Below are positions 43,608-48,775 of a DNA stretch of 64,000 nt, piece after piece. The notes below the pieces were generated by a model, which saw only the letters and a program-made list of their open reading frames with translations, ran no database searches and was not told the origin of the DNA. The DNA is from Podarcis melisellensis (lineage: Eukaryota), in assembly GCA_964234715.1 (NCBI GenBank), contig OZ174288.1. The stretch is one strand, 5' to 3'. The number at the start of each line of letters is the position of its first letter. Position 1 is the first letter of the stretch. Position numbers and translations under genes: made by a program.

Positions 43608-45228
43608 GTATTTCGTTTTTTAGCTTATCTTTTTCTTTGTCCATCCGTGCCACACACTTAAAAAACAAATTCTGAACCCCTCTGCTGCCTTAGTGTGTGT
43701 ATGCTTCTTCATGTCTTTCACTCTGCAGCTTTATTATGTCCTCTTTGGTGACCTGGCTTCTTTCTTGCTTTCAGTTGCCTGCCTTATATATATATATTCT
43801 CTTAGAAGCATCGGTATGCAGGCACAAGGCACTGGTGCAGGTTCTCCTTTTTTCTTCCTTTCTTGAAAAGGCATGAATAGTGGGTTTTGAATGAAAGCTT
43901 AACATTGATTATGAAAGTAGATTATTTAAATTGCATTACATTATAGATAAAAATCACACTGTCCCAGTCTTTAAGTGCTGGGGTGTTTTTTCCTTTTTTT
44001 AGTGTTTAAATACAGTGTACAGTATTTAACAACAAACATGCTTGCTTTGGTCAGGTGCATTACATATTCCACGATAAAAGTGTAACTCCTGGCTGTCAGT
44101 GGCCAACTACTGCTTCTCATTTGCGTTTTTAAGATAGTCCCATTAAACATTTTTACATGAATGCCCAGAAATGTAATGTGTGGATGTGACAAGTGTGTTT
44201 TCATCTACATATATCATACCAGTCTGTGCCCAAGGGAGCTGGGATGGTCTGCAGCTTCTGTAGCAAACCCACACTTCCATTGCATAATACTGTGCTTGCA
44301 ATATTGGCCCTGGATACAAAGAACCATGCATCTAATGCCCAAGAGCACTTTGAAATTATGTTTCTCAAGCACCATGGCAAACCTGTTTTTGGTACTGTGT
44401 GACATGACATTCTGATCTGCAAATTCCACCATATGGGGCTGAGCCCTTGGTGACCTCTTTGGATCTTGGTGTCGTCTTGTAATGGCCTCTCTCATCAAGA
44501 TGTACTTGGTTTCTCTTTCATGATTTGTTTCCTGCAGGAAATCAAAGCATATTAAAGTATTTTAAAATATTTTTCTGGCGTCCCTTGGTCTCCAGAAGTG
44601 AAAAGAGAGTGTGTTTAAAATGTCAGAAACAGCAGGCCTGGTCTTCTTTCGAAGGCTTCTAAGCAGGACAAATATTAGCAAGCAACAATCACCCAGGAAT
44701 ATAAATAGCCTTAGAAATGCAGACCAGCAGAATTCATGAGCAACCTGCCCCCCCCCCCGCAAAAAACTAAGATGGAGCATAGCTCATCCTAGTTAGTTCA
44801 ACTTAAACATCATTTTCTAGGTTGAGTTTTTTAGGACCTCAACTAGCTTTTAACAAAAGAGAATCATTTATTTGCTGTCAGCTATGTGCAAACTGGGGTA
44901 CTGTATATATGGGTACAATCCAAAGAACAGCTGGCCTTAAAATAGGCACACCCTGAGGGTCTTTATGTTTGTATTTCTTCACCACACTACTCCAAAGATA
45001 CCTGTGCTGTCCCCTTTTTCTCCTTTCTGGGTGTGGGGTTGTGAGCTGCTTTTGTAAATAAGGTGACTTTCCATGTCATGTTGCAGTTTATCTGTGAAAG
45101 ATGCTGTGCAAAGAGATTGCAGTGGACACATCGTGCCTGCTGTTGGACCTTTCTGGATTGCATTTTCTGTTTTTGTAGCCTGTGAAAATCTTTGTTCTTC
45201 TTAATTATTTGTTTTTCTTGTGCTGCAG

Positions 45229-45990: not shown

Positions 45991-46687
45991 GTTGACTTGC
46001 ACCATTTTGTTTTCGTATTTTGATTTCTTTTGCTCTCATCATCACAATCTCTTCATTGTTAATTGCTCTCTCTGTTGTTGTTTTTAGAGCTTTCTTGCAA
46101 AGTAGATTAGAGTGACTTGCTTGTGTCAGCCAACACCTCTTATCAGCTCTTGCTATGAGTTTAGGTTGACCCCTGTCGTGAAGGAAGGTTGGAGCAGATA
46201 ATCCTCATTCTACATATGTTGCAGAACTGTTAGGAAGGCAGAATACAATAGCTTGTGCTATTGTGCTAAAATGGAATGTTACAGATGAGGAACAATAATC
46301 TTAAAGAAGAGAGTTTTTGGTCGTCGTCCCCCCCCCAAATCTTCTAGCTAAAATAGATCTGCACCTAATAAATACAGTCTTTTTATTTTAATAACAAATG
46401 CTTAGCAGTATGACTCTTTCAGTGAAGTATGTAGTATTCTCTCTCAAAACCATTCTTGTTTATTAAAAATAACATGGTAGTAAACCCATGGAAAACAGAG
46501 CCTGTTGAATTATCAAATCCAATGTTTCTTTATAATGTTAGTTCCAGTTTTTCTCTGCTGTAATGCTAATAAAATATTTTGTATGTGGATGAAAAACAAA
46601 ACAATCCCAGAGTGTTTTAAAATGGTAGTGTTTTTAATTGAAGATGCTCCCCATTTTCTGTGTTCATATTCATCTGTGTTATATTAG

Positions 46688-46786
46688 GTTACTTCTTGCT
46701 ACATATGTTACAAAGAATGGGAACAGCAGGATGGTTTGTGTCCAGGAAGATTATGTCACTCCTTTGGCTAGCTGTTGTGTCTCCAG
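46688..46786 (+). CDS. SUN1: SUN1 coding exon 9
   Basis: GYFLLHMLQRMGTAGWFVSRKIMSLLWLAVVSP; 99 nt, phase 1-1. Confidence 0.92.
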
Positions 46787-47241
46787 GTTACTATTGATTT
46801 TGTGTGTGTATGTTTATGCTTTTGCATGAGTATTCTGCCTTTTAAAGCATACTGGCATCTTATGGTAGATGTGATCAGCTGATTTAACCTGGATTTGTGA
46901 TCCTTATGGCAGCTTCAAATGCTACACAGAAACATTTCCTACACAAAAAGCACTTCCTGTAAGTGTCATGGGGCTTGTTTGCACCATCAGTATACCTGAT
47001 GAGGCATGGGCTTTGGAAAGAAGTCTTTCAAATCAATAGGCAGAAATCTCTGTATAGAACTACCTACCTAACCGTCCGGAGATCAGGAGGAACCAACCAC
47101 TTTCTATTTCCTGCAGGCACTAGCCCTGCTATGAACAAAAGGTCACAAGTGTTCTCCATCGTCCTATACAGCTTCGCCTTCTTAGTTCCTGAATGTCCAG
47201 CATTTTTATTTGGAAAAGAGGATGAAACTTGTGTGTAGACT

Positions 47242-47697
47242 CAGTGGCATAGCTAGCCGCTTGGGTGCTGGGGGCGGCCCACACGTCCTGCAGCCGGGGG
47301 CAGGGCGAGCCACTTATAGGAGCTGGGCATGCTGCATGGAGCCTCTCTGCTGCCTTCCCCTCAGCTGTAGGGCGGCTGAGGGAGAGGCAGTGGGCACATG
47401 CAAGCCCCATGCTGTCGTTTCAGGCAACGCGGAACCTGCAGGCACCCAAGCCACCACCTCACTCCCAGGAGAGACATGTGGCTGGCACACGCTGCAGGCC
47501 CCTCAGTAACTGCTAGCCCCTGCGGTGTGGCACCTAGTGCCAATCGCGTTTCGTTATGTTTGTTGACCAAACTAATACGTTTCGTGAGCCCAGTGTTGTT
47601 GGTTTTTTTTAAAAAAACAACCACCCTCATATTTTTGTCTGTCACACCCCTCAGTGATGAGACCCGGGCGGCCCACACACCCCTTCCTCTGCCACGG
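47242..47697. mobile_element. GC-rich non-autonomous hAT element in SUN1 intron
   Basis: Ends CAGTGGCA / TGCCACGG; perfect 8-bp TSD TGTAGACT at 47234-47241 and 47698-47705. Confidence 0.85.
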
Positions 47698-48681
47698 TGT
47701 AGACTGGCTTAGTTTTCACATTGTTGCCTATGTTGAAGCGCTTTTCATGTAGGAAATGAACTTGTTTCAAGCATCCTTTTGGTTTTTCCATCGTTGTTTG
47801 CTTAATGCTAACATCTGTAGCATGGTTGTGTTCACAGCTTATTAATAACCCGGCATACCTTATACAGTGTGCCTGCTTCCAGTATTTCGAGGCAGAATTA
47901 GCTAGTTGTGAAAACAGAGGGCTGCTCTCAGAAATAGAGAAACTGACTCCTTGCAATTCCATGTAACCTTGGGCATCTTACTTCATCTCATTCCCCAAGG
48001 GGTTTCATTGACACACTAAGTACATATTAAGAATGCAGCTTCAGCATGCACTTTTCTTTTGTAAATTGTCAGACTTAAGTTGCTACTGCATTACTCTCTG
48101 CTGCATGACTTTGTGCATGTGTGTGTGACATTTCAGGTTATGAATATAGATTGTAATATGATGTGTTATGCACTGATTTCAATGTTGCATGTGTGTGGTC
48201 ATTTGCCAATACTCATTTATTCCCAAAATCTGCATGTCCTATAATATTCTTCTACAGCACTAACTTGTTGCTTCCACTTGGTCTCCTCCTAAGCCAGTGG
48301 TTTTCAAACTGTGTTCCAGGGAAGCTTAGATCTCCTCAATGAAAAGATGTGTAATGGTGGACAAACTTTCCCTAGAGGCTACTCGCCCAACGTTACAGAA
48401 CATCCCCTGCAGTGTGAAGCTACAGGGCCATGTTGGCTGTCTCCTTGGGTGCATCTTGGTTCATGGATGATAGTGGCCAAGCTCTGCAGGCCTAGCCAGT
48501 GTCTGTGTGAACAGAGGATGTGACTTAGTATATGTCCCAGGATCTTCATCCACTTACAGGGATTCCCAGCAGACATGTTGATTTGGAAAAGTTTCCCTGA
48601 AGACCCAAATGTTTGAAAACTATTGTCTTTGGTGGTTATCTTACATTCCCAATTCAGCCAGCGTTGTCTGTTCTCATCTAG

Positions 48682-48775
48682 GGAAGGCAGCTGCAGGAGT
48701 GTTCTGGTGGCTTGGGACTGGATGGTATCAACTTGTTACTCTGATTTCTTTGCTGAATGTGTTCCTTCTTACAAG
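48682..48775 (+). CDS. SUN1: SUN1 coding exon 10 (hydrophobic segment)
   Basis: GKAAAGVFWWLGTGWYQLVTLISLLNVFLLTR, highly recognisable SUN1 segment. Confidence 0.95.

Follow-up and report, generated by a model that had tools for sequence, protein, structure and literature searches.

A conserved intronic element of RBFOX type, predicted from sequence, adjoins a known cassette exon of SUN1 in Podarcis, and a truncating exon proposed beside it is probably not real

Introduction

The RNA motif UGCAUG is bound by RBFOX1, RBFOX2 and RBFOX3, and sites located downstream of an exon usually raise its inclusion, even from afar. Distal RBFOX clusters are known splicing regulators (PMC12435732; PMC6027157), and distal clusters of this type are common, with approximately 21,000 in mouse (PMC12435732). 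The distal (U)GCAUG clusters bound by RBFOX1/2/3, of which Ntrk2 is an example, hold at least four (T)GCATG motifs within 500 nt, are intronic beside an alternative exon and lie more than 500 nt from their likely target (PMC12435732), and the element in SUN1 described here is alike in each of these respects. It differs from the Ntrk2-type clusters in being known from sequence alone, with its binding and effect predicted, and in having turned distal through insertions in squamates, given that in turtle, stork and platypus it lies only 0.3-0.6 kb from the exon. The supplementary data searched for PMC12435732 contain no Sun1 entry. Another point of comparison is provided by the RBFOX RNA bridges of ENAH and KIF21A (Lovci 2013, in the account given by PMC6027157), since a duplex between the arms of an inverted repeat in the SUN1 intron (IR1) would likewise draw distal sites to an upstream cassette exon. 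Set beside that account of ENAH and KIF21A, the SUN1 arms differ in having the look of the ends of MITE-like insertions and in being squamate-specific, and they give modest signs of selection for a pairing that is itself predicted.

In mouse, exons 7-10 of Sun1 are alternatively spliced (PMC2919408; PMC6853637), and this is the same exon block as the one considered here. All of those mouse isoforms are in frame and keep both the transmembrane and SUN domains (PMC2919408; PMC6853637). The isoforms of heart, brain and muscle omit exons 7-9 (PMC6853637), and the testis isoform Sun1-eta is additionally without exon 10 (PMC2919408). Sun1-eta thereby lacks a hydrophobic sequence proposed as required for nuclear retention, and its presence coincides with a non-nuclear pool of SUN1 (PMC2919408). 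The literature searched yielded neither a regulator nor a cis-element for these mouse exons, and no report of a link between RBFOX and SUN1. NMD-coupled poison exons, such as those of SR-protein genes, have conserved splice sites and conserved flanks. A first-pass annotation of the Podarcis locus had proposed that RBFOX controls a truncating exon, either poison or terminal, in the intron between coding exons 9 and 10, and this candidate resembles the poison exons of SR-protein genes in that its stop would be premature, well ahead of the final exon junction, and differs from them in lacking conserved splice sites and conserved flanks. Here we describe, from comparison of amniote sequences, a conserved intronic element of RBFOX type that adjoins a known SUN1 cassette exon, and we conclude that the truncating-exon switch is probably not real.

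Methods

The window is a stretch of 64,000 nt of Podarcis melisellensis DNA (contig OZ174288.1), to which all coordinates refer. Its SUN1 locus was compared with those of Candoia, Sceloporus, Chelonia (turtle), Mycteria (stork), Zootoca and platypus, and further with those of Heteronotia (gecko), Hemicordylus and Elgaria, for a total of ten amniotes including Podarcis. Splice sites were scored using simple weight matrices derived from 186 real SUN1 splice junctions. Evidence for isoforms is at the level of annotation and consists of RefSeq-type model predictions. The protein check for the tail encoded by the candidate truncating exon included a search sized for truncated forms; NMD transcripts are invisible to such a check.

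Results

The window contains the Podarcis SUN1 gene on the plus strand, with exon peptides that match PF09387, HTH_SUN2 and Sad1_UNC (Pfam) and three exon peptides that match SUN1 of Podarcis raffonei and P. muralis at 100%. Mapping of a Podarcis protein onto the window confirmed the numbering of coding exons 9 and 10 in the first-pass annotation, and coding exon 9 was identified as the equivalent of mouse exon 10 by way of the mouse exon 6-8 junction peptide (PMC6853637). The intron between these two exons measures 552-727 nt in platypus, stork and turtle, as against 1453-2138 nt in squamates. A search of Rfam returned nothing above threshold, and no tandem repeats were found in the region of the exon 9-10 intron. 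The features discussed below are collected in Table 1.

Table 1. Coordinates of exons, motifs and repeat arms around the SUN1 exon 9-10 intron in the Podarcis window
Feature	Position	Strand	Remarks
SUN1 coding exon 9	46688..46786	+	99 nt, phase 1-1, cassette; equals mouse exon 10
Exon-proximal TGCATG	46823..46828	+	+37 after exon 9; overlooked in the first-pass annotation
IR1 left arm	46907..46957	+	Start of squamate-specific insertion 1
IR1 right arm	47734..47782	+	94th percentile of intronic conservation
Candidate truncating exon of the first-pass annotation	47821..47962	+	Acceptors 47821/47838, donor 47962; judged a pseudo-exon
GCATG pentamer	48044..48048	+	Common to Podarcis and Zootoca, variable elsewhere
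Invariant TGCATG, core of the RBFOX-type element	48102..48107	+	Aligned position identical in 10/10 amniotes
TGCATG	48114..48119	+	Podarcis only; TGCGTG in Zootoca
Second conserved TGCATG	48186..48191	+	7/10 species; TGCACG in gecko; absent in Candoia and platypus
TGCATG	48231..48236	+	Lacertid gain: Podarcis and Zootoca only
IR2 left arm	48294..48326	+	hAT/MITE-like end; start of squamate-specific insertion 2
IR2 right arm	48589..48625	+	
SUN1 coding exon 10	48682..48775	+	94 nt; Pfam PF09387

Exon 9 is a cassette exon in annotated isoforms. It is the only exon skipped in models of P. muralis (X11), P. raffonei (X2), Candoia, Vipera, Hemicordylus and Anolis, and models from alligator, axolotl, armadillo and elephant shark skip it along with upstream exons. 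The exon codes for a hydrophobic segment in the nucleoplasmic region of SUN1, and its skipping leaves the reading frame intact. Its donor, CAG/GTTACT (the slash marks the exon end), is weak: it scores at the 21st percentile, and in each of the ten species it departs from consensus at +3 and +5. No skipping of exon 10 was seen among the full-length SUN1 proteins examined.

Two further observations concern the surroundings of exon 9. At 46784-46794, the donor reads CAG/GTTACTA in 8 of the 10 species, followed mostly by T, with a match to U1 at +7/+8. In the intron between exons 8 and 9, which contains no TGCATG, several 35-nt windows at 46000-46560 are well conserved across squamates (0.74-0.79); it is possible that they are further control elements for exon 8 or exon 9.

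All of the motifs that the first-pass annotation had listed downstream of the candidate exon, namely TGCATG at 48102, 48114, 48186 and 48231 and GCATG at 48044, are present, and their density is indeed unusual, with four sense copies of the hexamer in 130 nt (scan P=0.001) and only 3 of 751 hexamers of similar frequency clustering equally tightly. Together with the pentamer, this gives five (T)GCATG motifs within 193 nt of intron on the sense strand, a distal RBFOX motif cluster by definition. The TGCATG close to exon 9 recurs at +31 to +46 in 8 of the 10 species, with GCATG in platypus and no copy in stork. The hexamer at 48102, present in Podarcis, Zootoca, Elgaria, Hemicordylus, gecko, Sceloporus, Candoia, turtle, stork and platypus, stands alone in the alignment of the ten amniote introns, where no other invariant run exceeds 2 nt. 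In addition, TGCATG is the sole hexamer that occurs at least twice in every one of the ten introns, and turtle and stork each have a third site of their own. Observed copies in the exon 9-10 intron compare with expected numbers as 4 vs 0.36 in turtle, 3 vs 0.21 in stork and 2 vs 0.16 in platypus, and the motif is enriched here over the remainder of each locus, with a Fisher p of ~1e-6 for the four distant lineages platypus, turtle, stork and Elgaria taken together; Candoia has two TGCATG sites only and is without enrichment (p=0.36).

A QKI-like ACTAAC at 48259 was considered and set aside, as it is lost in Zootoca. Elsewhere in the gene, TGCATG occurs two or three times in the intron that follows coding exon 7 in Candoia, Sceloporus and gecko, and not at all there in Podarcis or Zootoca.

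The letters on which the first-pass annotation had built its truncating exon are all in place, including a branch-like GCTAAC at 47807-47812, an AG before 47821 and before 47838, and CAT/GTAACC after 47962. Its translations were also reproduced, with the 47838 acceptor, spliced from exon 9, yielding a 125-nt version with an immediate stop, and the 47821 acceptor yielding an open tail of 48 codons with a stop at 47964-47966, which counts only when the candidate donor stays unused. Ranked among real SUN1 splice sites, the two acceptors fall at the 3rd percentile and the donor at the 6th. This donor has neither G-1 nor G+5, a double absence shared by just 2 of 186 real donors, the branch-like A lies just 9 nt before the 47821 AG, and the pyrimidine tract sits 5' of the branch motif, not between that motif and the 47821 AG. 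Within 25 kb of SUN1 there are 235 acceptors that score at least as high as the candidate and have a donor at least as good 50-250 nt downstream, and 9% of the AGs in the same 25 kb are followed by at least 48 open codons in the candidate's phase, so that the exon-like features of 47821-47962 are not beyond chance. Other AGs (47868, 47883 and 48137) and GTs (48019 and 48136) were tried as sites and rejected, all scoring at or below the 9th percentile.

The cross-species alignment went against the candidate, showing its splice sites not to be conserved. In Zootoca, which is ~95% identical to Podarcis in the intron, a 19-nt deletion takes out both the donor and the stop. The donor GT is AT in Elgaria and Sceloporus, is missing in Hemicordylus, Candoia, turtle and stork, and survives in 2 of the 10 species (Podarcis and gecko); the 47821 AG is found in lacertids only, and Elgaria, Hemicordylus, Candoia and turtle all lack the 47838 AG. 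The gecko keeps CAT/GTAAGC with an AG 125 nt upstream, in an alignment of 76% over 144 nt, that AG being very weak and scoring below the Podarcis candidate acceptors. Given ~75% local identity, this retention could plausibly be explained by descent alone. The segment 47821-47962 is ancestral intron sequence that can be aligned to a turtle counterpart with neither the AG nor the GT, and its conservation lies at the 68th percentile of intronic sequence, no better than ordinary intron. The element is thus retained in species without the splice sites of the candidate. In a scan for the two canonical hexamers AATAAA and ATTAAA, neither was found between 47966 and exon 10, a Pfam search with the 48-aa tail gave no match, and this tail is absent from all retrieved SUN1 proteins, also as an ending after exon 9. 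The candidate is most likely a pseudo-exon, a piece of neutral intron between exon 9 and the RBFOX-type element. The first-pass proposal thus survives in its suggestion of RBFOX-type regulation in this intron, which conservation supports, and fails in its choice of target exon.

Most of the extra intron DNA of squamates is bounded by the inverted repeats IR1 and IR2, which flank the TGCATG cluster. Both stems are present in 7 of 7 squamates, with IR2 partly eroded in Elgaria, and both are absent from the outgroups. If the IR1 arms paired, ~780 nt of the DNA that separates exon 9 from the cluster would be looped out; IR2 pairing would do likewise for ~260 nt of the DNA that separates the cluster from the exon 10 acceptor. 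Excision of both insertions in silico left 629-852 nt, alignable to the outgroup introns (552-727 nt), and put 351-618 nt between exon 9 and the invariant site, compared with 296-493 nt in outgroups. In intronic conservation the four arms stand at the 89th-100th percentile, with the two highest-ranking windows among them, a ranking that is partly post hoc because the arms were first noticed through their conservation; the left arm of IR2 is the best-conserved interior window among introns 5-10. For pairing bias on the transcribed strand, G-U was counted against A-C, giving an excess of G-U in IR2 (30 vs 10) that IR1 does not show (27 vs 21), with cells that are non-independent and with two-sided compensatory changes excluded. 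IR2 has inverted ends, which we take to resemble those of hAT-type elements, and an 8-bp duplication that has decayed, and turtle has a similar single site; the ends of IR1 are indistinct. No dispersed copies of the repeats were found in the window or the nine other loci, apart from one 20-nt match in Zootoca. Nested within IR1, at 47241-47695, is a GC-rich insertion with 85% identity to Zootoca, as against ~96% for its flanks, that aligns poorly in other squamates and has the look of a CpG-decayed repeat specific to lacertids.

Finally, two observations were made in other introns of SUN1. A 66-nt cassette candidate at 43775-43840, with surroundings alignable across squamates, is probably no exon, since its acceptor AG is lost in Zootoca, Elgaria, Sceloporus, Candoia and gecko. 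Turtle SUN1 models (Chelonia, Caretta, Mauremys and Pelodiscus) include an extra in-frame exon of 20 aa in the exon 6-7 intron, at ~+1075 to +1135 in the Chelonia locus, which is in no squamate protein of the set.

Discussion

The conserved motifs, the weak donor of exon 9 and the cassette status of this exon lead us to favour, as a rather likely explanation, that the intronic RBFOX-type element at 48044-48236, together with the site at 46823, promotes inclusion of the upstream cassette exon 9. It would be an old element, composed of one invariant site, one that is mostly kept and extra sites specific to individual lineages. Where RBFOX is abundant exon 9 would be retained, and where RBFOX is low it would be skipped in frame. 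For this element we infer RBFOX binding, the identity of the responding exon and the tissue pattern.

The element may instead act elsewhere, either on the acceptor of exon 10 or on the sequence in which introns are removed, and through it on the skipping of the whole exon 6-9 block, which we consider unlikely. Exon 10 is a possible target because the sites are ancestrally nearer to it than to exon 9, lying 77-320 nt from the exon 10 acceptor in turtle, stork and platypus, compared with 230-640 nt from the exon 9 donor. With IR2 excised, the invariant site falls 223-258 nt from the acceptor in 5 of the 7 squamates, near the turtle, stork and platypus values, and repression of the acceptor would skip the 94-nt exon, with a frameshift towards NMD. 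Nevertheless, the squamate insertion shifted the sites to 430-1150 nt from exon 10 and they persisted all the same, and the full-length proteins contain no case of exon 10 skipping, with the qualification that a frameshifted product would not surface as protein. The short isoforms of RBFOX1-rich mouse tissues also agree with action of this kind.

Less probable again is that the sequence serves another binder or purpose, such as UG-rich CELF/MBNL sites or a DNA-level element, or that the density in Podarcis is mostly chance around one conserved site. Half of the four hexamers, those at 48114 and 48231, arose recently and the motif flanks are TG-rich, which would suit such an explanation, but the invariant run coincides letter for letter with the six-nucleotide RBFOX motif in sense orientation, and additional copies turn over in other lineages. 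We regard it as very improbable that RBFOX turns on the truncating exon at 47821/47838-47962, possibly in some lizards only. The motifs do begin 82-140 nt downstream of the proposed donor, which is the classic activating position, and the gecko retains both a GT and an AG; set against this are the loss of donor and stop in Zootoca, the loss of GT or AG in Elgaria, Hemicordylus, Sceloporus, Candoia, turtle and stork, all of which keep the RBFOX site, and the low site scores, abundant equivalent pseudo-exons and lack of a poly(A) hexamer or tail protein reported above.

The inverted repeats suggest a further, tentative reading. Two DNA-transposon-like insertions may have joined the intron in the squamate ancestor, one to each side of the RBFOX-type element, with their terminal repeats then selected as RNA bridges that loop out the insertions, restore the ancestral spacing and preserve control of the cassette. 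We hold this to be possible but doubtful.

SUN1 exons 7-10 (mouse numbering) vary by tissue, influencing retention at the nuclear envelope and the binding of partners. The amniote-wide RBFOX-type site next to this block provides an exact element that is open to mutation. If the inverted repeats act as bridges, the squamate intron would in addition offer a clean natural example in which the ends of transposons cancel, in the RNA, the effect of their own insertion.
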